A DNA stretch of 64,000 nucleotides, taken from contig CP075492.1 of NCBI GenBank assembly GCA_021613535.1, positions 4,216,001-4,280,000 on the forward strand, given 5' to 3'. The notes under the pieces are model-generated. The model did not search any database. It was not told the origin of the DNA and saw nothing but the letters and a program-made list of their open reading frames with translations. Below are positions 3,601 to 52,496 of this stretch, in pieces. The DNA comes from Adineta vaga (Eukaryota > Animalia > Rotifera). Made by a program: the position numbers and the translations under genes. Position 1 is the stretch's first letter; each line of letters starts with the position of its first letter.

Positions 3601-6221
3601 TAAACGAGCTGGAGATACTTTAGCATTAAAAGTTGTTACAGTTAACATGCCATCAATGCTTTATTCTCATCAAGAATCACATTATGCTGCTTCTCAATCA
3701 TTACCATTTCGTCGTAAAGGTAAGTTTTTCAAATGAATTATATGATAAGAAAATCTCTTTCAATAGTCCTTCGTCCGAGTCTGAATAAACCTTTCGGTGG
3801 TATGTTCGCACATATTTTTCATATCTCAGCATGATTCTTTTCCTTCTTTTTTTAACTTCGTCACTTGCTTTAGTTTTCTCATCATCAAATAAATCCTTTC
3901 AATCATTGTTTATGAACAAAGGAGAGCATAATACCATCTTAGGTATTTCAAATCAGAATAGAAAAGCTAGCTAACTGCATGAAAAATTTTCACTAAAACA
4001 AAACATAGGAATTCTACTTGATTAATATCTCATATATATGTTTCTATTTTGTAGACGATCTGGATCGAACGTTAGCAGAATATGAATATGGAAGTATGTC
4101 TGAAGCGTATGTATCAATTGCAAAACAAACAATGGACAATATTCATAATGGATCTGCATCACTTCGTTTAAAGTAATGATTTTTCTTTTCTAAATCAACA
4201 AAATAAAAATCAATGTTTTTGTTTTGTGTTTCAAGAAGTAAACCAATGGTACCTGAACGAGATTCTTCTCTTTATGATTGTTTTACAAATACGACTCAAA
4301 ATCAACATGTTTATAACAGATTTCGTCCATTAATTCCTGCTGTTAGTGTTCCAAATCTAACATCTATGACAAATCTTCGTTGTAATTCGAATACGTCATC
4401 GAATGAAGCTGATGAAGAATCATCATTATCATCAATGAACAGTAATCAAATTGTCCAGCAAACAACTTCCATGGAAGAGAATGGCATTGGAATTTATATG
4501 ACACCATCTTTATCTTTAAGTACAACGAATATGTCGACGTTTAAAACAATCATCACTAATAATCCCTTACCGTCGAAACCAAGTGAAGTCAAACGACGAT
4601 CAAATAATCGAAAACAAATCTATGCAACAATTAATCTTAATAATAAAACCATCGAGAATGAAACTTCTGCTACTCCTGCACCACCACCTCCTCCTCCTCC
4701 TCCACCACCATTTCCAATGAATTTTGATTCATTCAATAGAATTCCACCTGCACCAGCACCTTCTATTCAACCAAAACCTATAAAAATCGAATCAGTCGCA
4801 ACAACAAATGATTTTCAAATACAAATTGAACAAGCAAAAAATCGTTTGAAGAGAGTTAGTCTTGAAACATCACCAACAAAAACAATAACAACAATAACAA
4901 CAACAACAACAAAAACCAATGGATTGATTAAATCAACTTATAAAAATCCTTCAAGTAATTATTCTTATTCTAATTGAAAGCAATTGAGAGAAAGAAAACA
5001 CTTGTACTCTTGACATTTTGTTTCTCTTATTTTCATATGACCCTAATAGTTATATGTTTATGTAACTTCTTACTATTGTTATGTAATATATCAATTGTAT
5101 CTACAATCATAACTTTTTTTTTATAAAAAGTTATGTCACAGGAAGTGAGAATGTTATAATCATCATATGTTGAGAAAAGGAAATAGTAATGAGAATTATC
5201 AATATCTATCATAGAGAAACTTACTAAGGTCATTTACACGTTTAAACAATGTCTATAATAATTATTTTTTTAAATTTAATTAGATGATTCAAATAATTAT
5301 CGTTCACCTGAATTGAAAAATATTATTATTGAAGAATTACCACCTACAAATGGTTTTCCTCCTCCACCATCACCAACAACACTTCGTCGTTCAACAACAG
5401 AAAAGTCATCAATCGATCCTCGATTAGATATTAATTTCTCTTCCGTTATTGCACAACGTGCAGCTGCTTCCAAAGCACGACGACATGATAATCTAACTGA
5501 ACTTGAATACAGTTCGAATGGTCTACCACCATCGACAACATTCTACAATCATTGTATTACAACAAATGGCATATCATCACATAGTAAGTAAAAATATTAT
5601 TATGAAATGTGTAGATTAACTGGTTATTTCAGCTCTTCATCACCATCGTTATTAAATTGTTATACAAATTTAATATATTTGTAAGAGATACGTGTGTATA
5701 TCATCTGGGATCTATTTACTTCTTTTTCGGGGTTATTTGTATCTATGAATTGCATGATAAGTCCTATATAGAGAATCAATTTCTTCTGCATGGACATATA
5801 TGTTTTAGTTCTTGTCGTTGTGTGTGTTCATCTTGATGTATGAAAATGTCGTATTACAAATTCATGCTAAAGTTAATCATTTCAAGAGAAATTCTTTGAA
5901 ATTGCCAAAAAAATAATATTCAATAATCGATTGCTCTCTTCTTTTCTTTTGGGAAGAAATTGATCACGCTGTTTTACTAATATACAATTAAAGCTTGACT
6001 ATGCTGGAGCATGTTTGGGAAAATTCTATTCATTCATTTAACATTTTCTTCGCTTCTTATCACATGATATTGTTCAATAGAGAAATTAATTTATCTGGAT
6101 CATTTTAGGTTCATCAAATCCACAACGATTTAGTGCGACAGCGAATCAATTATTAGAGAATCTCAAACGTCGTGGTGGAAATTTAACATCAATGGAACCT
6201 TTAATCAAACATTATAATTAA
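676..6221 (+). CDS. SHANK: SH3 and multiple ankyrin repeat domains protein (Shank/ProSAP), multi-exon
   Basis: Spliced exons give an N-terminal ubiquitin-like/FERM-F0 domain (IRIAIEDLNLQKVLKF...LNFGLYLPPSNGRAGKFLDESR), ankyrin repeats (GGAHLDFRTRNGGLTPLHKSA; GNTPLHICA), SH3 (RKRLYAAAPGR...LSLRKGDIVE...LEGWFP), PDZ (PRTVVLQRGKKGFGFVLRG...FPALQFLDS) and a Pro-rich tail. Candidate terminal exons are at 5633-5655 or 6109-6221. Confidence 0.93.
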
Positions 6222-26637: not shown

Positions 26638-28047
26638 TCACTTTCGATGATGACCACTGGGTAAACCTGCAGTAGGCATCTTACTTGGATCTTGTTTTTG
26701 TTTTTGTTTCGGATTATTTGAATAGTAGTCACTTCTGTTATCACTATGATGCGATTGCGAAGATGCTTGTACTCTTCCATGTGATGTTGATTTTGGTTGC
26801 GATAGATTACCGTAACCCATTATATCTTCAGGTAATTTTTTTGTTATTTGTTGAGCGTGTTGTGATACTGGTATACTGTGCTGATGTGACTGATAAGACG
26901 GCATCTGTTGTTGTTGTTGTTGTTGAGTAGAAGAAGAACCACCTTGACTTCGACTACCTTCGAAGCATAGCCATTGACCGATACAAACAAGCAAATTACG
27001 CGCATACAGCTGACCTCCCCAGCGGCGAAGAACAACTGATGCACCATAATATGCACCAGCTAGTTGCCCATAAACCGCAGCAGTTGTGTCAGTATCATCT
27101 CCAAGATTTACCGCATTTAGAACACCGTTTTCAAAATTGTCACCATCCGACCAAAACGCCCATAGAGCAGCTTCTAATGTGTTGATAATGTAGTTTTTAC
27201 CGCGAATGCCATCTTCATAACCACGTTGTTTCTTGAACGATCCTTTAGCTACAGAGATAACGTCAGGATGCAGCTGCCGAGATCCAAACCATGTTGTATG
27301 ATTTTCGACAAATTTTTCATCTAACAATTCCTTTTTAGACGTTCCTTTGATTGCGGCAACAAGTAAGGCAGCAAAATAACGGCAAGCATCAGCAGCTTTA
27401 GGATCACCATGCGTCAGAAGAGCACTCTCACCTGCCAGATGAACAGCACGCTCCGGCTGCCGATAGAAGAAAAGTGGAACAGGTGCAAGACGCATCAGAG
27501 CTCCATTACCAGCTTGTTCTGCTCCGCCACAGAACTCACTGAATCCTTTTACATTTCTAACTTCTTCCAATGGTAAATTATCAATCTGTTCGTCACTTGC
27601 ATTTCGAAAATGTTGCTTAAGTACATTTTGTCGTCGACAGAACTCTTCCAAAGCTGCACGAGTACTATTACCAATGTCAAAACATTGTCCCGTTGATGAC
27701 AAATATCCTTTCTTATACCACCATTTATAACGAACCATTTGATCGTATGTATTAAATCCACGTTGAGTTAGAAGCGACGAAGCTAAACATAGAGCCATAG
27801 AAGTATCATCGGTCCATTGTCCAGCTTGAAGACCCCATGTTCCACCACCTTGCATATCTCTAACAGGATGGTCTACAAGATACTGACGCGGACGAAATTC
27901 AACACTAGCTCCAAGTGCATCACCTATAGCGAGACCAACAAGAGATCCAACAACTTTCGCTTCCTCTCTGGGTGATGTCTGCTGTGCAGTTGATTGGCAG
28001 GAAATATTAGCAGGTAAGATACGAGCGTCAGGATGTGGAAATTGCAT
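26638..28047 (-). CDS. ADP-ribosylglycohydrolase (ARH/DraG family), copy 1
   Basis: GLAIGDALG, WTDDT, CFDIG, AGNGALMR, LTH, NLGDDTDTT motifs. Q/S/H-rich disordered C-terminus. CDS has no introns. Confidence 0.93.
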   Translation of the reverse strand: MQFPHPDARILPANISCQSTAQQTSPREEAKVVGSLVGLAIGDALGASVEFRPRQYLVDHPVRDMQGGGTWGLQAGQWTDDTSMALCLASSLLTQRGFNTYDQMVRYKWWYKKGYLSSTGQCFDIGNSTRAALEEFCRRQNVLKQHFRNASDEQIDNLPLEEVRNVKGFSEFCGGAEQAGNGALMRLAPVPLFFYRQPERAVHLAGESALLTHGDPKAADACRYFAALLVAAIKGTSKKELLDEKFVENHTTWFGSRQLHPDVISVAKGSFKKQRGYEDGIRGKNYIINTLEAALWAFWSDGDNFENGVLNAVNLGDDTDTTAAVYGQLAGAYYGASVVLRRWGGQLYARNLLVCIGQWLCFEGSRSQGGSSSTQQQQQQQMPSYQSHQHSIPVSQHAQQITKKLPEDIMGYGNLSQPKSTSHGRVQASSQSHHSDNRSDYYSNNPKQKQKQDPSKMPTAGLPSGHHRK

Positions 28048-28848
28048 TATTACAATAGTACTTTCAAAAATAATTCAAAGAAAATCTTACACCGCGTAGT
28101 CTATAATAAATTCGTAGTTTAATCGACTGAATTTTTTCCTTTCAACGATGAAAAAAAGCTAAGTGAACAATGTCTTTTCACGAAACGTGTTGTATTTTTT
28201 TTCTGTTGACTAAACTTTTTTCACAATCTCTTTTTTTCTGTTCTGCTTGACAACTGTGTTTGTCATATAGACACATAGTGTCTGATAAATTTATTCTTTA
28301 CGACCGACTGTCATACACTGACAAAAAATTTTACACGGAAGAATTGAATAGCCATAAATGAAAACAAAACATAATTCATCCTCATAAATATTCGAAGAAA
28401 AAAACATCAGAGAAGAAAGCTTTTTCTTCTCTAGTTTCGTATGTGGACTGAGGTGTTGCAAAAACAGGCGAACTTAAACAGATTCTTCTCTACATTTGCT
28501 ATAAAGTGACACAATTATTAGTAATATATTCGTAACAATGATGAATAAGATCACCATTTTACTTTTTTAGTTACTCTTTGTACTCAGTTTTGCAATTCAT
28601 ATTAACTGGCAAAAAAAAATATTTAAAGATAAGAGAAAGCTATTTATATATTAGAAGAAAGAAAAATAAAAGATAAATATTCGAAATTACACCATAACTT
28701 CAATATCTGATGTATTAGTTTCACAATTTTTTCAGTAAAATGACTATCTAATAGGTTTTTTTAATATCTTAAATTATTAACAAACACTTATTACAGATAT
28801 AAAACACGCACAGGATCTACTAAATAGCTAACATTGTCCTATAAGACA

Positions 28849-30498
28849 ATGTCGTCTTATTTATTTTGTCTTTTTCTTTTCTTACTTTATGTCAGTAGGA
28901 TATCAAGTGGAATAATTAATCGTCATACATTCAATTTCACTCTTGCTTATGCTGACAATTCCACATCCGTCTTACTTGTCAATAATCAATTTCCAGGTCC
29001 AACTATTCGTGTCAATGTTGATGATGTCGTTATCGTTCATATTCATAATGCTCTGCATACAATGGAAGAAGTAACAATTCATTTTCATGGTATGCTTCAA
29101 CGACAAACATCACATATGGATGGCGTAGGATTTGTTTCGCAAATGCCTATTCCATGTGGACGAACATTTACTCATGTTTTTCAAGCATTTCCCGCAGGTA
29201 CACATATGTATCATTCTCATGCAGGCTTACAAGCAGTAACAGCATTTGGTACAATTATTGTTGATGATCCGATGCGGCCATGGGAAATGCCAGAAGCACC
29301 ATCGGGACCAATTGCAATTTCGGATGAATGGTCCGGTGTTGATCGTCTTACACAAGAAAATGGTCTGATGGGATCACCATTTAAATGGGAAGGCGAACCA
29401 TCAAACTTATTGATTAATGGTCAGAAAAATTTCGTATTAACTCTCGATCCGGGTCGAACATATTTGTTACGATTAGTCGGTGGAACAAGTCTATCAACAG
29501 TTGTCTTCGGTATTACTCAACATCCAATGACAGTTGTTGAAGTTGATGGAAAATTAGTCGTACCAAAAAAGAATATGACATCAATTGAGATTGCTTCTGG
29601 ACAACGATATGTGGTTATGATTCAAACAAAAAATGAATATACTGGTGTTTATGCAATGCAAGCATCGATACGATGGCGACTTTCTGCAGCAAATTCAAGG
29701 TAATGAAGAATTTATTTCTCTATAGGAATAAGAATTATGTATTTCAGTTGTATCGGTATTGTACGATATGGTTTACAATCAACAGTTCCAGCAAATGTTT
29801 CCTCTCTTGCGCTTCCATCTCTTTTCAACGAAACAGAATTACTTTTATTTTCCTTTCGTGAACGATATCAATCATTACTTCCTACAGAAAAAATGCCACC
29901 AGGAAACGAAGGTCGACCTGATCTTGAAATAGTTCTAGTAGCAACACAAGATTATACTGCCGATGGTAAAGGTATCCGTTGGTATACAAACAACGCTACA
30001 TTTGATATGCAGCGTTTGAAAAACTTATCAACACCATTACTCATGGATCTATATAATGGAAATGAGCAAAATCTTCCACAGGATGTTGTTTATACACTCG
30101 GAAACAATCAATTAGTTGATATTGTTATTCAAAATACGGTAGCATTAAATGGTGTATGTGAATCACATCCAATGCATATGCATGGACATAAATTTTGGAT
30201 ACATTCATATGGAACTGGTTCTTATAGTCCGGAGGATAGTATTTGGCCAAATACACGGGATCCAGGATTACGTGATTCATTGATGGTTTATGCAAGTTCC
30301 TATGCCTATTTCTATCCGAATCGAAATGTAAGTAATCATCGAAAACCATGTGGATGGACAAAATTACGTATGATTGCAAATAATCCTGGTTTATGGATGT
30401 TTCATTGTCATATTGGTGCACATTCATATATGGGAATGAATATTCTTCTTAAAGAAGATATTGAACATTTATCAATGATATATTTACAACAAAATTAA
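28849..30498 (+). CDS. Secreted multicopper oxidase (laccase/ascorbate-oxidase-like), 2 exons
   Basis: Signal peptide; copper motifs IHFHG, MYHSH, HPMHMHGH and FHCHIGAHSYMGM; intron at about 29700-29747. Confidence 0.92.
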
Positions 30499-32088: not shown

Positions 32089-33481
32089 TTATAATTTCGA
32101 TTTTGTATGTAGTGTCGTTAGATTTTCATTTTCTTTCTTCGACCATTGATCACCTTCATAAACAATCCATTTACTTATACATGTGATGAATGTTTTTGCA
32201 TAGATTAGTTCAGTCCATTTTGATGGTAATTTGGAGTAACCATAATATGCACCAGCTAATTGACCATAGATAGCTGCTGTTGTATCAGTATCATCACCGA
32301 GATTAATAGCAGCTAAAACTCCTTTTTCAAATGAATCTTCATCGGACCAAAATGCCCACAATGCAGCTTTTAAACTATCAATAACATAACCTTTTCCTCG
32401 AATACCATCTTCGTATCCATTCTTTAACTTATAGGATCCTCGAATAATTTGCATGACATCATCATGAAGAGGGATATTACCGAACCATTTGATATGTTGT
32501 TCGTAAAAATCATCTTGTAACAATGAAGATTTCGGTTCACCATGAAGTGCAGCTACAATAAGTGCACCGTATAATCGACAAGCATCTACGGCTTTTCGAT
32601 CACCATGAGTTAACAGATTACTAACAGCGGAATATTCTACAGCTTTCGACGGATGTTTCCAGAAGAAAAGTGGTACGGGTGCTAAACGCATAAGACCTCC
32701 ATTCCCAGCAGCATCCATCTTTCCACAATATACATGAAAATCCTGTAAAACATTTGCGTCCGATAAGTGATCTATATATTTGCTAGGAAGTTTTGATTTT
32801 TTCATAAATTTTTCTTGACGTTTTTCAAATTCATGTAGAGATTGTCTAGTAGAAGAACCAATATCAAAACATTCTCCTGTCGATGACATATAACCATGTC
32901 TAAACCACCATTTATAACGAACTAATTGATCATATGGTCGAAAATCGTGACAAACAATCAATGAAATTGCCAAACAAAGTGCCATCGAAGTATCATCAGT
33001 GAACTATATGTACATCATAAAAATATACTATGGTCCTTTTTGTTTTCAAGATCGAATACCTGTCCTTTTTGAAGTCCCCATGTTCCACCACCTTCCATAT
33101 CATTAACCGGATGTTCAACTAGATAGTCATGTGGTCTAAATTCAACATGAGCACCTAAAGAATCACCCATAGCTAAACCTATCATCGATCCTAAAATCCG
33201 ATCGAATACATTTTTATCAATAGGTTCATGAAGTTCTTGTAAAGCAGACTCTAATTCATGAGGTTTGACAATAATGCGACGATCTTCATCATGGTATCGA
33301 GGATCAAGCCAATGCATTTCTAAGTATCAAATTGAAACTTTATCAAACAAAACACACAAAAAGATAAATTACTTTCTTGAGAATATGAAGAAGGAGAAGA
33401 TGATACCGTAGTCTTGAAGACTAAAACTAACATTTCGATAAAGTTAAGATATATTATCAAATTCTTACATTTACATCCCAT
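32089..33481 (-). CDS. ADP-ribosylglycohydrolase (ARH/DraG family), copy 2, 4 exons
   Basis: GLAMGDSLG, GQ/FTDDT across an intron, AGNGGLMR, NLGDDTDTT. Short upstream exons give the N-terminus MGCKFFKTT. Confidence 0.92.
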
Positions 33482-33865: not shown

Positions 33866-34858
33866 TTATGATCGTCGTTGACAACGAGGTTTTCGTAAGA
33901 CAATTGTATTTCGAAAACGTTTGAAAACATTTGGACTTCGTTTAACCGAAATAAATCGAATGATTTCATTATTTGATGAAAGAAATAAAATGACTGGTGA
34001 ATGTAATTTAATACATGGACAATTTTTCAATGGAAGATCGAATTGAATTTCATTGGAATCGATTTGTTTAAAATATCGAACTTTATGTTTATTGGCAAAG
34101 ATATAATTATCTTCGGATGTTAATGATTGTTTAACAGGACGCGTACGAAATACAGTTGATGAACGACAATAATCATTGAGTAAATCACTAATACTCGCTC
34201 GTGCTTGACACATGGAACACATCTCTTTTTGAACGATTGTTGTTGATGGAATAGGAGCCATGGTCGTAGTTGTAGTTGTAGTTGTCGTTGTTGAAGCTTC
34301 AGAAACACATAATTCTGTATCTGCTGGATATTGATCGCAAGCAACTGAAAAAAGAGAATGTGTAGCAAGAATGTCAAAAGGAATTGTTTAATTACTCATT
34401 GTTGGCCATTTATATCCAAATTGAGTGATCATTCTCGGTTCACAACTTTGTTTGACTGATTCACAGAGTGTACGACATGGATATAGGAATCGTTTATTAT
34501 CATGTGCCATATTTAATATTGAATCTTGATTATTATCAAATGAAACTAACGTTGATTTTGTAGGTGTTTGTTGAAGACAAACAGGTGCTAGAATCGAACA
34601 AAGTAACAATCGTGCATTGGTATGACAACCCAAACTGAGAAGTGATTGCCATAATGGTAATTCATAAAGAATTTCCGTAATACTTTCGTGATTAAGTAAA
34701 TTTGGTAGATGCATTTGTGTATAACCAAGTCCATAGCATAGAGTAAAATTTGATGGAATTTCTTGACAACGATGAATATTGCCGGGAAGAAAGTCAAAAC
34801 CTTCAGTTAATGAACATGAGATAAGTAAAACGAACACAGCGAGCAGCATTCTCTTCAT
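33866..34858 (-). CDS. Secreted frizzled-related protein (Fz CRD plus netrin-like C-terminal domain), 2 exons
   Basis: Signal peptide; CRD (C..IP..FTLC.GLGY..MHLPNLLNH...CH...LLCSILAPVC...PCRTLCESVKQSC...FGYKWP), poly-Thr linker, and a C-x2-C...YC...CPC...C NTR-like domain. Confidence 0.85.
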
Positions 34859-36386: not shown

Positions 36387-37704
36387 ATGCAGTTTCATCA
36401 TCAACTTGTTTTATTTGTGTGTGTTCTTCGTTGTCTCCAACCAACGCACGGTGAAATTAAACCTGTATTAATAAATAAATTTGAATTGGCATATGCAGGA
36501 TTTTCGACACTTTTACGTTCATGGACATTGAATTCAACATCATGGACTTTATCGATCTCCTGTTTTAATCCAATTCCAAAAACAACAGATTATGTTTACA
36601 ATGTACCAAATATTGAACGGCAATTAACAACAAAAATTACACCAACAGTTGTGACTAATCAAATAGTATGGCCAAATGGTATTGTAGCTGCAGATCAATT
36701 AGTCGAATATTCAACAATTGTTCCAAGTGGTTTTCTTGTTCCTGGCAAAACCAATGGAAATTTATATTATATGTCTCAATCAGGACCAATAGCATTAGTA
36801 CCAAATGATGGAACACATTGGTTTTATCATGATGCTGCCTTCAAAGATATGGATGGAGATGGTCATATTGATATTGTTACAGGACGAGCAAATGTGCCAA
36901 TCATTGGTACGCCAACTACTCAATTGATTTGGTTGAAAAATCCTGGTAATTATACAATTACTGGTCCTTGGAAACTTAATTATTTATTAAGTGATGGTGG
37001 ACCCGATATTCAAGTTCAATTTGCTCAAATTAATTCAATAAATGTAACTTTTATCGATCCTATTCAATTCTCTATTATTATTTTTTTAAATTTTATTATA
37101 GGTACTCTTTGCTAATTCTTATTTTACGCGTAAACTTCAGATGTTTTGGTCTGATACAGATCCACTTTGGAATGATGCTTCTAAATTACATGTACGTCAT
37201 ATAGATTATCTAGCTGTACCGTATGCGTATGTTCAATTAACTATTGATCTTAATGGTGATCAAAAACCGGATTTACTTGTGACTGTAAATGATCAACATA
37301 ATGGATCATTGATCGCCTATGAATTACCATCTTCAGGTGATGTACGTCAAGCAAATTTTACTAAACATATTCTTGCCACTGGTTTTGCACCACGTACTCA
37401 AGCTAAAGGACGTGGAGCACCTGGACAAGCTGTAGCAGTTCAGTTCTATTCTCCATCTATTTCTCGAAAGAAACCTGTTTTAGTTTTATCAGGTGATGAT
37501 GATGGTTGTGTCTATCTATTAGAAGCTCTACATGATAATGATCCAACGAATTGGGAATATTCGAAAAAGATAATTCATCGATCAAGCAAATCAACAATTG
37601 GGCAAATTAGTATTGAAGATGTTGATAATGATGGACATCCGGAGATGTTCGTACCAGCTTATAATGAAGGCATCGTTTATATTTATCGATTAATAGATAG
37701 TTGA
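36387..37704 (+). CDS. Secreted FG-GAP/VCBS-repeat beta-propeller protein, 2 exons
   Basis: Signal peptide; three Ca-binding repeats DMDGDGHIDIV, DLNGDQKPDLL and DVDNDGHPEMF; WPN, GFLVPGK, WFYH and GAPG motifs. Confidence 0.8.
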
Positions 37705-38056: not shown

Positions 38057-41000
38057 TTAGTTAGTTTCGAGTATTGCTGATTCGAAAGAAAAAAAGATCG
38101 ATGGTTTTTGCCATTTGACTACGATAGGTTCAGTATCAAAAACGTCATTCCATGGAAACTTTAATGGAAGTGTGATTGTATGACGCTCTAATATTGTTTT
38201 AATTGGTTCAATTTTCATTTTTGAGAATGGAGATGGACAAAATATGGCTGCAGGATACACATAAATCGGTTGTGCTGATCGTCGTTTTAATCCATGTTCG
38301 ATATCGTCACAAAGTTTATCCAACTCGCTTTGGTTCTTTCGCATCTGTTTGGCAAATTGCAATCGATATTCAAGTTTTTCACTATCGGAAAGTATTCGTC
38401 TCACACGATGCATATAAGGAATAACAACTTTTCGCCGTTCATCATGTTTTTTAGCAACTTTCAACTCTTTATTGGTATTCGTAGAGCTAAATATTGGCTT
38501 AACGGGAAGTGAGAATCCTTTCAACTTTTCCTTCCTCTTTGTTAAAAAAGTATTTGTATATCGGCATGGTTTAGATGAAAGATATCTGCTACCAACACGG
38601 TAGTCCTTTGATGTTAGTGATGAACAATTCTGTGTTAGATTGTTTAAAAGATGTAAGTTATCTAAAACGATATTCAGCACAGGAAACGCTGTATCGTTTA
38701 TATTACCAGTTGCTGCAAATGGTGCGATATTTAATATTGTTTTTGAGTATTCAATTTTTTCCGACCATTGTTTGTAAGAAAATATTCCAATAACGAATCT
38801 TACACTACATATTAAGTTGTCTTTTTTTTGTTGATCCTCTGTACTATTTGTATGCACTAGAACGAATCTCAGAAATACTTTTCAAAGCAATATACAAAAA
38901 TCGATACTACTACTTACGATAGTTTTGTCTTCCATATGATATATATTCCTCACATTGACTTTCTTTTTCCATAATTATGTCTTGTACTTGTAAAATAAGA
39001 TTCTCTTTATCATCCTCCGTGATTCTTCCTTTCTCTAACATCATCGATTTTTTAACATTCTTCTCATATTGTGATTTTCTTTGTTCTATTGTAAGCAAGA
39101 AATGTAATTCCTTATTGTTTAAATAAGATTTCACTATCTTATGTTGATTTGATACGATAAATGGAACAGATGAGAATATTGAATTAGGTCTCGTATACTG
39201 CATCTGAAAATGATTTCAAAAGTATCGTAGAATCATAATTTCGTTTGAAAGGAAATCGGTTTTGAGAATCCACTGAACGCTATCTAAAAAGACATGTTTT
39301 TGATACATCGACATTATACTTACGATTTTTAAAAGTAGTTTATCATATTCCATATTGAAGTTGTGTTCAGATCCAAATAGTTGAAAATAGGTTCCATTTT
39401 GAGTGAGTAATTTTTGTAACCAATTAATTGGATCATAATTTTGAATTTTTACTGCAATGATAATTTTACCAGTTTCATCAGCATATGTTGCTTCTTTTTT
39501 ACATAATTCATCTTCAAAATAATTATTACTAATACAAAGAATAATACAATCTGATTTATTCATTTTTCTTGATATCTGTTGAAAACTAGCTGTTCCATCG
39601 ATTGATTTCATCCATATATTAAAACCATCATGAACTAAGCGAGTTGCTAAACTTTCTGCTACTGACCAGTCTTTTACTGAATGACTCAACATTATATTGT
39701 AACGATTGGGAGTCGTGCTAGTTGATGGTTGATGTGGTAGAAATATTATTCCTTGAACGAATGCATTTGTTAAATGATATTTTTGCTTAACTTCATATAC
39801 GTTATTTATAAAACCGCATAATATGAGTTGTTGCTCTTCATCTAATTTTGGTAATACGTATCGATTAATCGAATATTCATAGAAACTATTAATCATATTT
39901 TGATTCCAATGTTGAAATCCATCTATTTTCAGTGTAAACATCGATCTGTTGAGATACATATGAATACTCTTTTCACAATCTGTAAAATAATCCGTGCTGG
40001 TTGACATAAGCATAATTTTCATAGCTAAAAGTGAATACAAAATCAAAAGAAAATGTTTGAAAATACATAAACTCCAATGATATCTTACTTGAAACTGGAT
40101 AAGAAAGCGTTCCAAAACTATTTTCTGTTGTTGGTACCGACTGAAGGCTCATAAAAAATTGTTTCTGTAAAGTTTTTTGATCAGGTAATAAAACAAATGA
40201 TACATTCAACGGTATAGATTTGATTAATTTAATTTGATTCACTGTTGCTTCAATCATTTCTTCTGCTAATATTTGTTCTTGTTTACATGAATCTGGAACT
40301 GCAAAAGCGATTGATTGGACTGATTTACTGTTCTTTATTACATATCGTATTGTTTTGGAAATGAATTCTGATATAGATTCACTTAAATAATCATCATCTA
40401 CCATTCCCGTTGGTAATGACCAATTAACGAACAGAATCTTTTTACAAGCTAATCTTCCACCGGTGGTTTCAGTAATAAATGGAAGTGAGTTCGATCCCAG
40501 ATCTTTTCGAGATTGTTTTTGAACGATTTCACCCGCTCGTTCAATTATATTCTGCTTTACGCCAGATGATAACGACGAAATAATTATAATATCTACCTAA
40601 TATATATTCAAGTAAAGAATAGGAAAACATGCAAATTAACTCAAATAATCAATACTAACTTTTTGTTGAGAGATATCACCAGTGACGATATTGATCGATC
40701 CATTATCGAGTTTAACTCGAGAGGAAATAGAGGGCGACGAACAAAATGGATCAGATGTGTTTTCATCGGCTCTTGGAATTCGACATTGTTTTAATTCTGT
40801 AATTGATTCAAAATCACAATAACAATGATTTTTTCGTGCAAGATTTTTCATAGGTAAGAAAGATTTGTCGATAATATTGTAGTAGAATTCTTGACTTTCA
40901 AATCTATGTGTATGTATTTTAGACAATAAGTTCATTACACATGTTTCTACTTCATCTTTCAGATTTTCTGATGCATAAAAAGATCGTTCTGGAATTAAAA

Positions 41001-42472
41001 ATTGTACACCATAATTACGAAATTGTTTTTCAATGTTTTGTAGTTCTGTCAAACAGAGATTTTTTAATCCATCAAGCTAAATAGAACAAAAAGTGTTGCA
41101 TGTGATTGTCTGATCGATGTGAACAAAATAAATAAAATATAAGCATACCTCATTCGGAGTTATTCGACTAAATTTAAATCTCTTCAATTGATGACGTTCG
41201 AATAAAGATTTAAACTTTCGTAAGATTTCAGTAACTAATTTTTCATATCCAAATATTTCAATTTTATTCTTCAGACAATATTTACTGCAAGTAACCGAAA
41301 CAATTGAATTATCTTGTGAACATTGATTGATAATTTCATCGAACTCAGTATTATATTGTGTTGTTGGACAAATCCGATAGTTTGATAGAGTCTTTTGTGT
41401 ACGATTATCAATCAATTCAATTGTGAAGAATTTATCATTAGATGAAGTAAGTATACTTTTATGTAAAATGTTATTTTGAAAAATAACATCGATTTCTGTC
41501 GTATGATATGGAGAATTAAATTCATCATCATCGAAATAGTAAATATCCAATGTTTGATTGCATTTTCCCGTTAATTGACATACTGTAAATATATGGGATT
41601 CAAGATCGAATATATTTTGAACAATACAATTTGGTTTTGATTGAAGTAATAATTTTGTAATGGTGTTTTGTAGATATCTTTTTGATTTGATTACTTCTTT
41701 TAAATGTTGAAGAAACCGTTCGACAAGCCGATTTTCTTGTTTTGTTCCAGTGACTTTAATGACATAGTAGACTGATGAATTATTATCGTTCTGATGCATC
41801 TGTTCAATTACAATTTCAATTGATTTTATTTCTTGTTTAATGAAATTAATTAAATGAGATTGTAATGCTCGATTTTTGAAAAATTTCGCTTGAATAATAT
41901 CATCAATGAAAAATAAAGCTTCCTGTCTGACGTTGTCAGAAACTATATTGTCTGGTTGTTCCTGTTAAAAATAGAATCGAGAGGTAGTGTCTTACATCGA
42001 AGTCATTTATCATCAATTCAAAAGTATTGATAATTACCTCGTTCGAATGAACTGGTGCGTTGACATTAGCTCGTACTACTGTTAGTGAATGATCAGAAGT
42101 TCTTAATTACGCATATATATATCTTACAATATAATCAAATGAAAAACAAATGACATACTCATTTGTTTTCTTCGCATTTTCTTGTTCATTCTGTAGTTTT
42201 AATTCCATTAATTTGATTCGAAATCTACTTTTTGCACCAATTGTTGTCTCTTGTATCGATCCATTTGGATCTATTTCCACTACTAATTGTGAAATATCCT
42301 CGTCAGTCATAGCCATGAGAGCATGGCCATCTATATTCTCATCTAATATCAAGAACATTCAATTTCTACAAGTGTGACAAAAAAACTAATTACCTTTGAA
42401 TATCTTTACTTGTCTCCTGAAACCATTGTCTTTTAACCATCTAGAGACTTGTTTCACCGACCAATTTGCCAT
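38057..42472 (-). CDS. SAM - KH-like repeats - macrodomain - TIR - unknown C-terminal domain protein (paralogue A)
   Basis: SAM (MANWSVKQVSRWLKDNGF.../DENIDGHALMAMTDEDI), macro-like (INIVTGDISQQK/VDIII...TTGGRLACKKILFV...SIAF), TIR_2 (YNIMLSHS...IILCISNNYFEDELCKKEATYA...IIAVKI). About 9 exons. Confidence 0.8.
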
Positions 42473-43334
42473 TAATTTCCGAGATCTAAAATAAATTATA
42501 ATGGTAAACTTTTCAACTGTTAACTTCTTGTTAAATCAATGCTTAAAACAATTTAGAACGTGTTATAAGAACTTGCGATCGGATTTTTACTACCTATTAT
42601 CTTGTTATTGTTAATGTGAATATAAAATAGATGTATAAGAAATAATATCAAAAATGTGTCCTAATGAAATTATTTATCCAACGACTGACGATAAGCTGCT
42701 TTGCCTACTGATCTGGCTATGTATTGTAGTTGTTTCTAAAGAGTTTTGACGGAAAAAGTCTCATATGGTGAATGATTTATGACTCGATGGAAGATTTTTT
42801 CGGTAACAGTTTATCCTCCTCTTAAAACTCTATGACGTTAATATACTTTTACTTTTTTTAAGATTTATTATCAAGAAAAAACCATTAATACAAAACAAAT
42901 AGAGTCAACGTATTTCGGTTGCTTCGAAATTCGACTACTATTTTTCAACAATCAGATTATTCTCTTCTGTTCTTACTCTTTAATAAACGACTTGTTCTTT
43001 ATATCTAGTTACTTCTCAAGACTTGTTATACTTATTTTCTTCTTTTTTTTCTTTTTTTCCTTTCTTGTAGTGCAAAAGATGATGATTATAGATGACACGA
43101 AGATACGCATAGAAACGGTTACCACCGTGATACATCAAAACTGATGAAACATCATTCTCCCATCCAGACAAATATAACTTTGTATATAGCCGTTTCCATG
43201 TCTGTCTTGTTCTGGTACTTTCTTTCAATTTTTCTGTATTTTTATCAGGTTTTTAAAATTATGAAAGGTTGTTAACGTCTTCAAACTTACTTTATACGTG
43301 ATAATAAGTATCTTACGAGTTTTGAGATTTAGAT

Positions 43335-46300
43335 ATGTCAGTAGGTAATTTGACTACTAATCAAGTTGGCGATTGGTTGACAACCAATGGATTTGCTGAA
43401 CATATCAAAACTTTTATAAGTATAGAAAAATTCTGATTGATAGTAAGTTTTAATTAGATTCTTTTTGTACCGAAATTAGGTGAAGACATCGATGGTGAAG
43501 CATTGTTCGGTCTACTTGATGATGAAATAATGAAACTATTAACTCTTTATGACAAAGACGGAACCATAAGAACTCCTACGAAAAGAAAACAACGTAAATT
43601 TAAAATAATATTGGAAGAATATCGAACATCAGTACAGCAAGAACGAAGAAAACGGAGAAGAAGCAGGTATGTAAATTTATATTTTCTTTCTAACGAATCT
43701 CTTCGTATTCTAGATCAGTAATAAACAAAGAATCTAATGAAAATCTTGCTATCAAGTAAGAACTAAATTGTAAAAGATAATATATTCTAAACATGTACAT
43801 TCATTCATTCTTAAGCTTACGCACGATGCCATCAAAAGTCACAGGTCAATCAGCCAAAGAACGATTAGCATATTCAAAAAATTATGTTGTCGAATCAACA
43901 ATCACGAGTTCGAAATTCTTTCAAAATGAAATGGTCACTTCGTTTTTAACGAAATATTATCTACGAAAATTTAATGTCAAGTATTATATATCAGCATATG
44001 TTTCATCTGATACAAAAGATACATTAAAAATCGAATTAACAGGTGATAAAGCAAATGTCACGAGTGCTCTGACTGATCTACAATTATTATCTGAAAGTAT
44101 AAAAATAAAAATTTTTGATAATCAAGAAACAGATCATAGAAGTAAGCGTTATGAGCTGTTTGTTGTCTTATAAATATGCATGCAATCTACGTTTTTGTAT
44201 AGTTATGAATTGGTCAACATCGATATATTCAGATTCTGTTCTTCTTATTTTGCAAAAAATCTTTGCTGATCGAAAGAAATTAACAATCTGGGAAAAAACA
44301 AATCTATTATCTGGTTATTTTATAGTTTATTATATCAGTGGAGAACATCGATTCAATCTTTCAGAAGAATTTATCTATCAAATGCTCAATAATGAAATAT
44401 CTTACGTGGAAAATATAGTAATATCAAACATGGATAAATGTCAATCTAACTTTCGAAGGGCAATCAAAGAATTTATCAATAATAAAAAACAACAACAAGA
44501 AAAACTTCAAACAATGACCATTATTTATTACCAATCTGTATCTCAATCAGAAATGAAAATCAGTTTTTTTGGATTGAAATATCAAGTTGATATTGCCAAG
44601 AAACAACTAAAACTATTGATTAATAAACATCAAATACGAACAATACGAATTGAACTCGATTCAAAACAGGTATAAATATATCAGATGATCGATTAGATAT
44701 GTGCATAATCATTCGTTCTTATTAGAAAAAAGTTTGACTTCACGTTTTTTCTTTTCTTTTGTAGCGTGAATATTTATTAGACAACTGTATTTCTCAATTG
44801 AAACAGATAGAATTGGATTATAAAGATGATAATGTTCATATTCAAATCCATTCAAATTTACTTACTGCACCACAATATCTCATTGTTAAAATCAAACAAT
44901 TGATTCAATCATTGCTCTTTCATACAACTACTCTTACATTTCGTTATATCGAAAACGGCATTACCTTAACTGAACATGATCAGCTACAATTGAAAACTAT
45001 CGGTCAAAATCATAATTGTCAACTAGATCATATCGATACACAAACGGAAAAGGAAATTATTCTATTACCGAAAAGCAAAGATACACCAACATCAAAATAT
45101 ATTATGAAAAAATCAGAAGAATTTTACACTTCATTAACACCAGTCTGGAAACTTTCAGTTGAAACAAATACAATAGAACTTCGTCCAGCATCTAATCCAA
45201 CAGTGAGTTGAATGATACATTTTATTGTGCTCTAGAGATTCTTGTTATTTGTAGAGTGATATAACTGTTATCTCAACAACGGAAGATATAATCAAAGAAA
45301 ATATTGATTCCATACATCGGAATGGTCATTTTATATCTGAAAATGGTAAAAATATTTTAGTAATACTATGGTCACCATTGAAAGATCCGATCGAAAAGTT
45401 GATTTCTACATCATTCAATCAGATTGATGTGTTATGTATGGACAGTATTGAGTCAATTGCGTTTTCTACAACTAATTGGGAAAAAATTGATGATAAAAGA
45501 AAATTGGCAGAAGAAATGATCAAAGAAATGAAAGACTTGCTCGAAACTGAAGACTTTGCCAATCGATCTTGGAAAATTTCATTCAGTTTTAATGATGAAC
45601 AAAATGATTTATTGAAAGAATTTTCGGAAATTATTATATCATTACGATTGGCAAAGAATGGTTATGAACAATTTACCTATCCCATAACAAGTATGTACGG
45701 AGATTGCAATGATCTTTTTTTTTGGAACCTGAATAATTCTTTAAGATGAATGATCGGGATTTTGATTCAGTGCTTAGAAAGTTAGTTGTCAATAGATATG
45801 TATCATATGTCTTAATCATACAGAAGAATCCATAAATGAAAATTTCTTCTTCATTCTAGCAACTTCATTAACGTTGAAAACATCGTCAAATTCAAATATT
45901 ATAAAATCTGAGAATGCAATCAATGACTATATGAAAAGATCTGTTCTCAGCACAATTGAAATTTATAATCCTTTCGATTCTAAAATATGGAATCAACACA
46001 TGATCAATGTATTTTATAAATATTGTTTGGAGAAATGTGTATTACCTGATATTCATCTATTCAATGAACAATATCATTTATATTTAATCGGCTCAAAATC
46101 TGCTGTTAATCATGCAAAAGAAAAATACAAATTCATGACGGAAATCGAACGATTAAAAGCATTAATTCATATTCCATCGTCAGAATCTGTGTCGAAGAAC
46201 AAAAACTCAAAGACTATTTCAAGCACTTATAATATCATATTAAATGGCTGTTCGAATGATAAAGATATATTAGAGAAGCTTGCAAAGCGTTTCAATGATG

Positions 46301-48029
46301 AAGGTTATCGAGTATTGATTGATTATTGTGATATCAATCCATCAAATAGCAAACCAAAACAACATTACAATAGCGATTTAATTGTTATCTGTTTTAGCTA
46401 CCATTACTCGCAAGATTCTAGTTGCATGAAAGCAATGTTATCTATTAAGAAATCTGAAAAGAAATTTATTCCATTCGTCTTATTAGAAAAAGCTTTGAAT
46501 GAAAGAAGTAATTGGATTCAGATGTGCTCCACCGAAACACTCTTTTATGAGTCATTCGAAGAAGAAATCAGATTTAAACTTGAAGAAAACTTCGATTTGG
46601 ACTATGATAAGTTATTTATAGAATTAGTAAGTATGTTTTTATTGATACACTTGAGATTAACATAAAGGACTTGCCGTAAAAGAATGTTAAATGAAATTAC
46701 AAGATTCTATCTTTATTTGTAGCTTCATTATACTAAACCTGGTGTAGTCGATCGAATCTATGCAATATCGGACGATGTCACTAGTACAGAACAACGTGAA
46801 GAAGATTTTAGTCTTAAAAGAACACTCTCGCCATTTACCCAAGAACAAATTTGTAAAAAAGAAGAAATTTATCGAGAAAAAATTGAACATATCTTAGAAC
46901 GAGATGCTATTCCAACGGATGAAGTGACCAATTTAATTGCATTACTAGGTATAATTCTTGGAGATAACGGAATTGAAGGATATCCCGTGTTAGTAGAAGA
47001 CCATCAACCACAAGATGACGGATACATAAATCGTAAGTAACATCAGCTAATCCTCGAATAGTGAAATATATATAAAAGAGGAGTATCTAATAATCCACTC
47101 GGTATTCTATAAATTGATATAAATCATTATTCAAATCTTATACAACTAGTTATTCCTTTAAATGTCACAAAATTTCTTTATCGATTCATATTCTATGAAG
47201 ACAACTGAACAACGTTTTTTTTTTCATTAAAGCTGTAGGTGTTCAAGATTATCTCAACTCTTTTTTATTACGTCTACAACGATGGATAGAAAAGGCATCA
47301 AATGGACCCGTCTGTAAGGGCAATATACCACCCTTTACCGTGACTGGCGACTTCAATGATGCTATATTTCCGATTTCATTATTGGACAAAACTCCTTGGT
47401 GGGAAACCGATTTGGATTTATATGATTTTGATCATTCTTCAACAGATTTTGATAAAGTCTCTCCAGAGTTAACTATCGGTTCATGGAGCAGTTATGATGA
47501 AGCACAAAATTATTTTCAAAAACTTGTCAACAAAGATGCTCGATTTCGTGATAAACAACTGAACAATAAAAAATCACAAGTACCAAGTAGAAAACAGCAC
47601 GCATATTTCAAAACGAATATTAAACGAGGTACTATTGCTTGGGATATCACTGAAAATCGACGAGTTTTAAAAGAATATGAACGCAGAAAGAATGGTGGAA
47701 AAAGAAAGAAACTAAATTCAAAAACACGTAGTTCGTTGAATTTGTTGGATCGATGGGTTCAATTAGTATCAGATCTAAAAGAAGGTAGAATTAACATGAA
47801 ATCAAATGAAATACGAGGTACAATTGGAAAAGAATTGAAAACAAAAGACGAAATCAGAAAACGTATAGAATCAGACGATCCGAATAATACACAATGGTCA
47901 ATGGAACGAGTTCCGCCAAGGCGACGAAAGTTCATCAAATTGAAAATCAAGAATACAATTGAATGGGAAAATTTCTGTGAACAATCCGAATTGAAAGCTC
48001 AATCAGTAACTATACAAGATACAACGTAA
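43335..48029 (+). CDS. SAM - KH-like repeats - degenerate macrodomain - degenerate TIR - unknown C-terminal domain protein (paralogue B)
   Basis: SAM (NLTTNQVGDWLTTNGF.../EDIDGEALFGLLDDEI), WNQHMINVFYKYC shared with paralogue A, TIR_2 (YNIILNGCS...LIVICFSYHYSQDSSCMKAMLSI...FIPFVL), and a TGDFNDAIFP motif. Confidence 0.78.
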
Positions 48030-48147
48030 AATCGAATTTTTCATTTCATATTAACATATATTTTTCGCAAAAACATCTGTGATTAAATAAAACAAAATTT
48101 ACATGAAAATATGTTCTTTTTTTTCAGATAAAAATCATTTGAATTCC

Positions 48148-50437
48148 ATGGATTTGTTACTTCAACGGTATCAACAAAAAATTCGTCAATTTCATAAAAC
48201 TGAACGTATTGCTGATATCAAAGATCTTCTCGACGATATCGTATCATTTTTAAACGGTACAATCTCGAATTCAATCGATGGTTTACATCTTTTATCAGTA
48301 ATCTGTTTTGAATTAACATCAATTCATACATTAAAATGCTTTAATAATTCTGAAATAATCAATCATGAATTTTTCATTCTACTTCGTAGTACATTAATGA
48401 TGTTACTATCGAAATTAACATTTACAAACTTATCAAAACCAGAGAAACAATGTTTAGATGCAATTAGTTTATTTATCACTCAATTATGCTTATATAAAAA
48501 TCAAATTTCTTTAAATTTCTTTATTGATAATAATGAACAATTGGATCCAAATAGCAAACATACAATTCATTTATTATCCTATGAAAAAATCTTTTTTTCA
48601 GAATTATTTATTAAAAAATTTATTCGAATCTTAAATGATGATATATCTGTTAAAGAATATAAACCATATCATATCAAATATAAAATTGTTGATCGTTTCC
48701 TTCGAATAGCAATGAAATGGATTGATACTAATTACAAATTACTTCTTGATTCCATCGTTAAATGTCTTGAATCATCAATTTATTTGAATCTTTATAAAAC
48801 TATTGATCTGCGTCAAATGATCTTAAGTCCAAAACAATCATTTTTCATGTATCAATGTCCGAAATTTATTCGTCTATGTAGTCAAACTCGTCAAGTCGAA
48901 ATATCGGAGATCCTATCGAAATCAATGATACAATTTAGTAATGATATCTTTGACATACAATTAGGAACTGTATTGGATGGTAAATCAAGAACTCAAGTTC
49001 TTTCATGGTACATTGAATTATTGAATTATTTTGCTTTAACACCGAATACAAGAGAATTTTTTGTTCGAAGTAAGTTTGTATTAGACATCAGTAATTTGAA
49101 GATATACGATGTAATGAATGTGAATGTTTTTGTTGAACTATTCATTTTTAGGAATCAATTTTAGTACGACAATGGTCGATCATATGATTGGAATCTTGAG
49201 AAGTGAACCATTAATTATAAGTGTTCATAAAAATGCTGAACTTTTTCATGCTGATGTTGCTCTCATGTCATATTCAATAACATTGTTATATAATTTAACA
49301 TTTGAAAAGAAAATCTTTTATGATTTGAAATATCGAAATGTAATATCTGTTTGTGAGAAACTCTACGAAGCAATCGATCGAACAATACAATTTGCATCTC
49401 GAACTTTAGGTGCTATTTTAAATCAAGAAGATATTGATGAAATTGATAGTCCATCAAAAGTAGCACGATCCTATTTATATTTTATTGAAAATACAATTGA
49501 TGATATCACTCTTACATATCATGGAATCAGATTAGATGGTGTATTAACAAATCTTGAAAGTATAATATTAAGAAAAGCTTTCGCTTTTTTTTTCTACTGA
49601 TATTCTGTTTTAGCTATTGTTCAAAATGATGAAATTAAAGAAGAAATAACGAATGATGGCGATGGTATTCCATTAATTGCACGATGTGCATATGAACCAC
49701 ATCTTGATATCGTCACAATTCAACGTCCAGCTCTTCGAATTCTTGATGCAATATCATTTGCCAGTCGGTCAGCAATAGAACAGATCAAAGAAAATGATAT
49801 TTTAATGGATCATATTAAAGATATCTCACGACGTAATGATCGATATCAAATATCAACAGCAAATCGTCTTCTATGGAAAGTAGAAGAAGAAGCTGAATTT
49901 ATATCAAAACAAGACACACGAAAGAAACCGAAACGAATAGAAATTAAGAAAATTTTCAATGAAAAAGAAGCGATTTATCAATATGTTCAAGGAGATTATT
50001 ATTTTCAATTGACTGATGATATCAATTTAAATCAATACGATATTATGATAAGTTTTTGTCACGATGATATAAAAATATGTCGTGATATTTATAATCATCT
50101 TCTAAATTTAAATCTCTATCGTATTTCATTTGATGAAGATAATACACATGAATTAAATCACAAACGAATGGCACAAACAATTGAAAACTCTTCGATTGTT
50201 ATTATATGTTTTTCAAATAAATATCGCTTGTCTTATGCTTGTCGATTAGAAGCGGAGTATGTAGTGAAACGACAACGTCCGATTATTCCAGTGAAAATTG
50301 ATCCACGATATGATCCAACTGGATGGTTAAGTAAAATTATTGACAATAAAACAATTGTTGATTTGACAAAACCGAATTTTCAAAATGCATGTCAACAATT
50401 AGTTGATGAAATCTATCAAACAAATGCAGTACAATAG
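48148..50437 (+). CDS. Helical/ARM-like repeat - TIR domain protein, 3 exons
   Basis: Long helical N-terminus with ARM-like segments (LLYNLTFE; GIPLIARCA...ALRILDAISF; ANRLLWKVE). C-terminal TIR_2 YDIMISFC...MAQTIENSSIVIICFSNKYRLSYACRLEAEY...PIIPVK...PTGWL. Confidence 0.85.
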
Positions 50438-50537: not shown

Positions 50538-52496
50538 ATGACGAAAGATTATATGGTACTCTGGTTAGATACAAATCGTGTGTTTTCCAATGAGGAAAAT
50601 CAAGAATTCATCTCTCGATTACGATCCATCGTTGACACTGTCAAAGTCTATAATCAACTCGATCAATGTATTGAATTTCTCGAGAAAATTAAAGATGAAA
50701 AAGTTTTCTTGATTATGTCCGATTGTTTTGCTCGACAAATTAGTTCACTCGAAGAACAATTCAATCAATTGAATTCGATTTATGTACTTTGTAATCAAGA
50801 ATTTAAAGTTAATGAAATTGTGCAAACATATAGAAAAGGTAGAGGAATTTTTACTAAAATGGAACAACTTTGCAATGAATTAAAAAAAGATATTCGTCAA
50901 TTAATTAACGATTCAGTTTCGACAAGTATTATTCCGGCAACGGCAAATATGAATGATCTCAAAGGACTTGATCCAATATTTATGTATTCTCAATTATTAA
51001 AAGAGAATCTTTTTACAATGGAATACGATTATAAGCAAGAACTCGAACGATTTCTTGATTATCGCCGTAGGTTTTATAAAAATGATTTGATAGAAAAGAT
51101 GACAATTGAAGATCTTAAAAATAATTACCATAGAAAAACACCGATTGAATGGTATACAATGGAAAGTTTTTTATTTAGAATGCTTAATCAAGCCCTAAGA
51201 GAATTGAATATACAAACGATTATTCGAATGACATTTTATCTTCGTGATCTTCATGAACAAATTAAGCAACGACATTCCGTATCAGATCTTAGTACTTTTC
51301 CACATACTATTTATCGTGGTCAAGGCATGTTTAAGAAAGATTTTGATGAGCTGCTCAAATCAAAAGATGGTCTCTTCTGTTTCAATGTTTTTCTTTCGAC
51401 TTCATGCAGCAAAGATGTTGCTTTGAGATTTGCTCGTTATTCTCAGTGTGATAGTGCTAAAACGTCAATTTTATTTGAAATTAAGATTGATCCACCAATG
51501 GCAACATCTTTTTTTAGTGATATTCGAGAATTAAGTCAATTCTCAGAAGAACAAGAAGTTCTTTTTTCTTTGTCTCCGATTTTTCGAATTGGTGATATCA
51601 AACAAATTGAAGAACGTCTATGGCAAGTTAATCTTACTCTGACAAATGAGAAAGATCCACTACTCAAACGTCTTACTGATCATATGCGAATTGCACTTGG
51701 TCGTGGCGATGTTTGGCATAAATTAGGTCAATTGATGCTTAAGACAGGTCAATATAATGATGCTTTAGAAACATATAAAGTATTACTTGAAAATGTTGAA
51801 CCGAACGATAAAGCAGAAAATGCTTTTCTTCACAATCAACTTGGGTATATTTTAAAACAAAATGATCAATTAGAAGATGCATTTTTTCATTGTCAACAAT
51901 CGATCAAAATTTATCGAACATACATGACAGAAACTGATGCTCGTTTATCAAGTGCTTACTCAAATATTGGTGGAATCTTGAAAAAACTAGGTGATGCTAA
52001 TAGTGCATTGAAATTCTATGAACTTGTCTTAAAAATTGATCTTTCTGCAGCAAAGCCAAATCAATTAGAAATCGCTGTTGATTATAATAATATTGGTGCG
52101 GTACATGATGATCTTGGAAACTATTCCGAAGCACTCAAAAGTTATGAACAATCATTAGATATTAAACTTAGTCATCTTCCACCTCATCATCCATCAATGG
52201 CCAGTACTTATAGTAATATAGGATCAATACATCAAAAGATGGGAGATTGTTCAACTGCATTGTTATTCTATGAAAAAACACTAGGAATTCAGAGAAAATC
52301 TTTACCACCAAATCATCCATCACTCATTGTTACCTATGGAAAATTGGCAACCGTATACGAACGATTACAGCGATACGAAGAAGCCATTCAAAATGCTAAA
52401 ATAGCTGTTGATATCGCTGGTAGAGCGTATGGTGCATCACATCCAGAAGTGAGTAAAAGACAAAATTACTATGATGAACTTCTCAAAAGACTTTAA
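50538..52496 (+). CDS. ADP-ribosyltransferase (ARTC/R-S-E class) - TPR protein, intronless
   Basis: N-terminal LWLD...CIEFL...KVFLI...SIYVLC domain; ART motifs WYT...LNQALR, IYRGQ, FLSTS and EEQEVLF; about 6 kinesin-light-chain-type TPRs (PPHHPSMASTYSNIG). Confidence 0.92.
   Translation: MTKDYMVLWLDTNRVFSNEENQEFISRLRSIVDTVKVYNQLDQCIEFLEKIKDEKVFLIMSDCFARQISSLEEQFNQLNSIYVLCNQEFKVNEIVQTYRKGRGIFTKMEQLCNELKKDIRQLINDSVSTSIIPATANMNDLKGLDPIFMYSQLLKENLFTMEYDYKQELERFLDYRRRFYKNDLIEKMTIEDLKNNYHRKTPIEWYTMESFLFRMLNQALRELNIQTIIRMTFYLRDLHEQIKQRHSVSDLSTFPHTIYRGQGMFKKDFDELLKSKDGLFCFNVFLSTSCSKDVALRFARYSQCDSAKTSILFEIKIDPPMATSFFSDIRELSQFSEEQEVLFSLSPIFRIGDIKQIEERLWQVNLTLTNEKDPLLKRLTDHMRIALGRGDVWHKLGQLMLKTGQYNDALETYKVLLENVEPNDKAENAFLHNQLGYILKQNDQLEDAFFHCQQSIKIYRTYMTETDARLSSAYSNIGGILKKLGDANSALKFYELVLKIDLSAAKPNQLEIAVDYNNIGAVHDDLGNYSEALKSYEQSLDIKLSHLPPHHPSMASTYSNIGSIHQKMGDCSTALLFYEKTLGIQRKSLPPNHPSLIVTYGKLATVYERLQRYEEAIQNAKIAVDIAGRAYGASHPEVSKRQNYYDELLKRL

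Follow-up and report, generated by a model that had tools for sequence, protein, structure and literature searches.

A close described counterpart of the locus examined here is a vertebrate interferon module, in which a bidirectional promoter serves the head-to-head genes PARP9 and DTX3L (PMC11251020) and the two proteins associate through KH-like domains (PMC11080071). We describe here a comparable arrangement in Adineta vaga, a rotifer of the bdelloid group, found in a stretch of 64,000 nucleotides (‘the window’; C3:4,216,001-4,280,000 of a 100.8-Mb, six-contig assembly, which our own-genome searches covered). Two divergent paralogous genes, termed A and B, each encode a PARP9/14-type scaffold, a macro domain between putative KH-like units, with a TIR domain in place of the WWE-PARP end; together with a third gene, C, and an ADP-ribosyltransferase (ART) gene, D, they form an old, repeatedly copied four-gene cluster of bdelloids, which is likely a module of immunity based on nicotinamide adenine dinucleotide (NAD). 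Bdelloid immunity is, to our knowledge, largely unknown. Within the window, the pair is laid out as follows:

38057..42472, minus strand: gene A, nine exons, 1283 amino acids; exon model equal to public I4U23_011937
39324..40024, minus strand: exon 7 of A, KH-like unit and TIR with Glu at the catalytic position (Pfam TIR_2, 59 bits)
40089..40700, minus strand: macro domain of A (exon 6 and the last part of exon 5), GDI Asp kept, PARP14-type IAFPxIGxG loop absent
42473..43334, no strand: divergent intergenic region, 862 nt, candidate shared promoter
43335..48029, plus strand: gene B, ten exons, 1282 amino acids; shortened macro domain, Ala at the TIR catalytic position
45860..46626, plus strand: exon 8 of B, KH-like unit and Glu-less TIR (Pfam TIR_2, 36 bits)

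Both exon models were built from the sequence, with all introns GT..AG and reading frames free of internal stops. That of A is identical to the public A. vaga protein P0012 (I4U23_011937); the public B protein, P0014, is shorter than our model, missing two in-frame stretches of ~31 and ~15 amino acids. A runs from a SAM domain (residues 1-85) through KH-like repeats (~120-480), a macro domain (~495-680), a further KH-like unit (~690-785) and a TIR domain (799-918, containing the αC Glu) to a helical C-terminal region that includes the TGxxND motif. The domain order of B is the same, and SAM_1 and TIR_2 exceed Pfam cut-offs in both proteins, in line with the shared order seen in the initial annotation of this DNA. 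Much else in that annotation is borne out: the start codons, at 42472 (minus) and 43335 (plus), lie 863 nt apart; the proteins are highly diverged paralogues (23% identical by blastp across 1139 columns, E 3e-68); and the phase-1 intron of the SAM domain is among five introns with identical aligned position and phase. Its list of shared motifs stands with one small correction, LxYTxP being wrong for A (MQYTRP); its account included neither the KH-like units nor genes C and D next to the pair.

The assignment of the macro and KH-like parts rests on structure, because Pfam scans at cut-off detected neither domain in A or B. An AlphaFold model of A (residues 95-930; mean predicted local distance difference test score, pLDDT, 81) comprises repeated beta-alpha-alpha-beta-beta-alpha units, a macro domain, one further unit and the TIR domain. 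The macro domains of PARP15, PARP14 and PARP9 are its best PDB matches (the top Foldseek match is PARP15 macro 2; Z is 19.8 to PARP9 macro 2 and 19.5 to PARP14), after which come matches of the TIR to Hydra TRR-2 (Z 17.0) and SARM1 (Z 15.1). Among Atlas models, those nearest to A are PARP9, a PARP14-like protein and a macro-WWE-PARP of a rotifer (alignment spanning 185-836, with a template modelling, TM, score of just 0.29), and the first non-bdelloid sequence match of A is a fish PARP14-like protein (E 1e-5). Macro-WWE-PARP genes of the A. vaga genome itself match A across the KH-macro-KH stretch, with exon starts apparently at the same places. Pfam scans of A and B gave no match to a PARP (C-terminal WWE-ART) domain, the position of which is occupied by the TIR, and none to NB-ARC or LRR; they returned a single N-terminal SAM and no ARM, and thus not the order ARM-SAM-SAM-TIR. 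We infer from these likenesses that A and B descend from a macro-PARP in which the WWE-ART end was exchanged for a TIR and a helical tail.

At the site where an own-genome macro-PARP, which retains the PARP14-type phosphate loop, reads PSIGCG, the macro domain of A reads AVPDSC, although its GDI Asp is kept; that of B likewise lacks the phosphate loop and has lost the GDI Asp and ~25 residues, both of which A keeps. The macro domain is the most conserved part of A (mean identity 0.45), and this bears on the suggestion that the KH-macro stretch imitates the animal’s own macro-PARPs as a ‘decoy’, such that a pathogen factor attacking PARPs would trip the TIRs. Resemblance to endogenous macro-PARPs, a degenerate ligand loop and the TIR as a usual output domain would all suit a decoy; with the macro domain so conserved relative to the rest of A, and rapid diversification not in evidence, we hold the idea to be highly unlikely. 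The most distinctive unassigned part of the family is the conserved region that follows the TIR (A ~925-1090, B ~917-1065), with YTKPG, a helical hairpin and WxxK...PPFTxTGDxNDAxFP; it is without a fold match, a poorly folded model of the C-terminal region (pLDDT 63; predicted TM score, pTM, 0.34) giving no structural match except to the TIR.

Head-to-head A-B pairs occur at 10 loci, in Adineta, Rotaria and one metagenome, so that the linkage called for in other bdelloids is indeed seen, and a one-off local duplication is ruled out. Four are in A. vaga (one in the window, the rest at C3:4.86 Mb, C3:14.26 Mb and C1:11.45 Mb), and every B gene of this species (4/4) faces an A; the others are in A. 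ricciae (L063), A. steineri (L068), Rotaria sordida (L057), Rotaria socialis (L059 and L060) and a metagenome contig, where the ATGs are 6.8 kb apart with transposons inserted between them. ATG-to-ATG distances at loci other than the window span 853-6795 nt, the genes flanking the four-gene cluster vary, and a comparison of the divergent intergenic regions between loci found no conserved DNA or promoter block. The A and B types form two clades of the tree (100/99), and Didymodactylos has both.

Several copies are incomplete or irregular. The fourth A. vaga copy (C1:11,449,800-11,451,350; L045/L046) has an A complete save for its SAM and a B that ends after the start of the macro domain, with neither C nor ART. 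At C6:701,400-704,200 (L047) there is a remnant of the 14.26-Mb type, which keeps an Ank-ART gene, a fragment of a C-type TIR and the 3′ portion of an A but has no middle section. The B gene of C3:14.26 Mb changes frame in its KH-TIR linker (C3:14,263,498-14,263,549; L043 ~4000-4035), owing to a frameshift or else to a GT..AG intron that, at ~38 nt, would be unusually short, and was joined with an X at the break. In R. sordida, the B-C-ART block has an A upstream in one assembly (L057) and a beta-lactamase-family gene in its place in another (L056), possibly reflecting presence/absence variation of A.

The initial annotation had raised the prospect that B might be an unexpressed or neutrally decaying copy. 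In RNA contigs (from runs guessed to be RNA), B introns 1, 2, 3, 6 and 8 are spliced as modelled, and a contig piece lies inside the B TIR exon. The ratio of non-synonymous to synonymous substitution rates (dN/dS, Nei-Gojobori) is 0.27-0.42 for B-type TIRs, and 0.40-0.42 for the window B against its metagenome orthologue; a Thr-type A TIR gives 0.14 between two Rotaria species, all of these values being rough, with dS near 1 in most pairs. The Glu-less TIRs of B and of Thr-type A are therefore conserved under purifying selection, and the open frame, splicing and dN/dS below 1 rule out a decaying pseudogene.

The column of the catalytic Glu was placed by aligning a profile of the family TIRs to C. 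elegans TIR-1 and Cat1, with the αC Glu of which it coincides; the contrast of Glu in A with Ala in B, as first annotated, holds. A phmmer search of the PDB with the A TIR alone gave no useful match where the family profile succeeded, and a word-index search with the B TIR exon returned nothing where a profile search did find matches. Residues in this column, in the order A/B/C, are:

Window: E/A/E
A. vaga C3:4.86 Mb: E/S/E
A. vaga C3:14.26 Mb: E/V/E
A. ricciae: E/V/E
R. socialis L060: E/H/A (for A, the residue of its 95-99% identical cluster representative)
R. sordida L057: E/E/E
R. socialis L059: T/Q/A
A. steineri: Q/Q/E
Metagenome contig (A/B only): Q/A

Five of these nine linked pairs are thus Glu/non-Glu, one is Glu/Glu and three are non-Glu/non-Glu; none has Glu in B only. 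Across the rows of the tree, Glu is present in 24/35 A and 10/30 B sequences (P 0.006, a value overstated by rows that are related rather than independent), and A has lost it in 3/9 linked pairs and 11/35 tree rows, with Q, T, G, I, K, S or N in its place. The asymmetry, to be checked in other bdelloids, survives in part: it is never reversed in linked pairs, and a ‘one active, one dead’ split is a tendency that holds in about half of the copies. At L059, Glu is gone from A, B and C, and the ART-TPR gene has no ExE match; this is possibly an enzyme-free version of the cassette.

The annotation had gone further, casting A as a dedicated NADase executor and B as a dead sensor or inhibitor joined to it through SAM, in the manner of RPS4/RRS1. 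The Glu/non-Glu pattern of 3/3 complete A. vaga copies, A. ricciae and one R. socialis locus speaks for such a division, as does the bias of Glu towards A, and plant sensor TIRs are likewise variable at this position (PMC13725568). However, A repeatedly loses its Glu yet remains conserved, where plant executors are uniform (PMC13725568); one R. socialis locus has no Glu in any of the three TIRs and the R. sordida locus has it in all three; and a fixed split fails in four of the nine linked pairs. Neither does B look like a sensor: it carries no extra sensor domain, its macro domain is more degraded than that of A, and its TIR is not more variable (mean identity 0.38 vs 0.40). SAM is found in both partners at just 4/10 loci, in neither at three and in one partner only at three, so that SAM-SAM contact cannot be the general ‘glue’ and an obligatory co-assembly through SAM is not supported. 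Taken over the family, we regard the executor/sensor scheme as rather unlikely, although it is a possible reading of the Adineta copies.

Downstream of B, the window continues with the remaining members of the cluster:

48100..48127, plus strand: T-rich YAG acceptor-like site, 20 nt before the C ATG; candidate trans-splice acceptor
48148..50437, plus strand: gene C, helical-repeat N-terminus and TIR with Glu (Pfam TIR_2, 55 bits)
50538..52496, plus strand: gene D, ART-TPR protein, no introns; carries R-STS-ExE motifs

C, the N-terminal repeats of which faintly suggest an ARM/HEAT-like fold, comes after B at every locus with a complete B, and 3/3 close A. vaga C genes come after a B. An ART gene (ART-TPR or Ank-ART) follows C at 7/8 loci. 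The same-strand gaps between B and C, and between C and D, are 30-590 nt and mostly <260 nt; a T-rich acceptor lies 11-30 nt before the C ATG at 7/9 loci (background 4.2%) and, by the same rule, before D at just 1/3, with no splice donor in the four gaps checked, that between B and C in the window among them. Trans-splicing and operons have been reported for rotifers (PMC12460157), and such gaps with donor-less acceptors fit a candidate trans-spliced operon, B-C-D.

A shared promoter and such an operon might by themselves keep the genes linked, with the products acting as separate proteins of one pathway and forming no A-B complex. Short gaps with donor-less acceptors would hinder separation whatever the proteins do, and B-C-ART without A is found in two assemblies; but A still faces B across gaps of up to 6.8 kb with transposon insertions, and the two clades have remained distinct in sequence, making this explanation, in our estimation, quite improbable.

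Synthesising these observations, we favour, with confidence and doubt about evenly balanced, a model in which A and B form a co-regulated heterocomplex, on the pattern of PARP9-DTX3L, within an ADP-ribose-linked immune or stress module. The observations beneath it are the architecture, the paralogy, the linkage with C and an ART gene, the expression of B, the purifying selection and the pattern of Glu. A PARP9/14-type macro-PARP would have had its WWE-ART end swapped for a TIR and then undergone an inverted duplication to A and B, earlier than the divergence of the bdelloid genera sampled. A shared promoter would drive both genes, and A and B would be held together by contacts between their KH-like units and between their TIRs, with SAM as an optional extra. 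We speculate that a stress or infection cue brings the TIRs of A and B into clusters, which then recruit the TIR of C; the cue is possibly ADP-ribosylation by the linked ART, read by the macro domain of A, or RNA to which the KH repeats bind. The TIR of B would serve mostly as scaffold or regulator; where A or C has its Glu, assembly would also cleave NAD+ to ADP-ribose (ADPR) or cyclic ADP-ribose (cADPR), and where both lack it, signalling would be by assembly alone. NADase activity of the A TIR is plausible, because some rotifer TIRs of other families produce cADPR in a Glu-dependent manner (bioRxiv 10.64898/2026.04.20.719644).

A number of observations weigh against this model or parts of it. 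The canonical phosphate-binding loop is missing from both macro domains, which makes the reading of ADP-ribose doubtful; the KH identity of the repeats is a tentative call from secondary-structure topology and faint matches (KH_PARP14_8 at E 7e-5 in one homologue, under the cut-off, and Atlas feature scores of 0.75-0.79). In L056 and L062, B-C is present but no A can be seen, and L053 has an A without a B within ~9 kb upstream. One R. socialis locus (L060) has no ART, and ART is the weakest of the cassette links because ART genes are common in A. vaga (at least 150). In the RNA contigs, A is represented by unspliced exon-4 pieces only.

A bolder version, which we consider unlikely, treats the genes as one mobile block, an operon-like cassette for NAD/ADP-ribose defence: the ART would write ADP-ribose on sensing, a PARP14-derived A-B macro-TIR heterodimer would read it, TIR assembly with C would produce cADPR or drain NAD+, and B would be a built-in brake. 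If true, this would be the logic of a bacterial defence island made from animal parts.

Around the cluster, two ADP-ribosylglycohydrolase-like genes, named by eye, lie 5-11 kb from A in the window (26638-28047 and 32089-33317, both minus strand), and a third (L064:1-1245) lies at a distance of ~5 kb from the C3:14.25 Mb copy; they are possibly erasers for the cassette, or chance members of an expanded family. Also in the window are a multicopper-oxidase-like gene (28834-30498, plus) and a secreted frizzled-like gene (33866-34858, minus), both named by eye, and an FG-GAP-like gene (36387-37704, plus) for which the metagenome contig (L052) shows synteny with A. The A. vaga genome as a whole has large TIR and macro-PARP families (52 TIR exon and 24 macro matches); on C5, TIRs are clustered in tandem at 11.69-11.76 Mb.

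Our literature searches found no paper describing the A/B family or the cluster, and UniProt identifiers of the family were not found among the supplementary-table rows listed of an animal-TIR preprint. Natural copies of the cluster form a ready test series, having three, two, one or no catalytic TIRs, with or without SAM, in which one can ask under what conditions an animal TIR has to act as an enzyme and where a scaffold suffices, and whether Glu-less partners regulate catalytic ones.

Set against known systems, PARP9-DTX3L (with PARP14) is a closer analogue than the RPS4/RRS1 pair first proposed: it shares head-to-head genes, macro domains, KH-like repeats (putative ones in A and B), one partner with a catalytically inactive domain and an ART gene at the same locus (PMC11251020, PMC11080071). 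A and B differ in that both are paralogues ending in a TIR, without PARP or RING-DTC, with an N-terminal SAM in some copies and the macro ligand loop lost, and in that their heterodimer and shared promoter are putative. Plant paired TIR-NLRs (RPS4/RRS1, CSA1/CHS3) likewise consist of linked paralogues in divergent orientation, of whose two TIRs one is often Glu-less (PMC13725568), whereas A and B lack NB-ARC, LRR and any partner-specific integrated domain, and the supposed executor, A, is often itself Glu-less. SARM1 and C. elegans TIR-1 similarly join SAM and TIR in one chain, with a TIR fold close to that of A (Z 15.1-15.3) and an aligned Glu, and gene C resembles an ARM-TIR; in A and B, however, a single N-terminal SAM, missing from many copies, sits ~700 residues from the TIR in place of tandem SAMs beside it, and there is no ARM. 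Bacterial Macro-TIR fusions (two ESM Atlas clusters, with 1234 and 144 members) also have macro and TIR in one protein, and Thoeris-type operons also cluster NAD-handling genes, but A and B are intron-rich animal genes; because macro-PARPs are the nearest relatives of their macro and KH stretches, the animal fusion most likely arose independently. There are, then, precedents for each element (the macro-PARP scaffold, head-to-head immune pairs, ARM-TIR and bacterial Macro-TIR) and none known to us for their combination in an animal: macro-PARPs and TIR NADases, two NAD-based immune toolkits, are here united in one animal protein, and a pair of such proteins is placed in a cluster kept across bdelloid genera.

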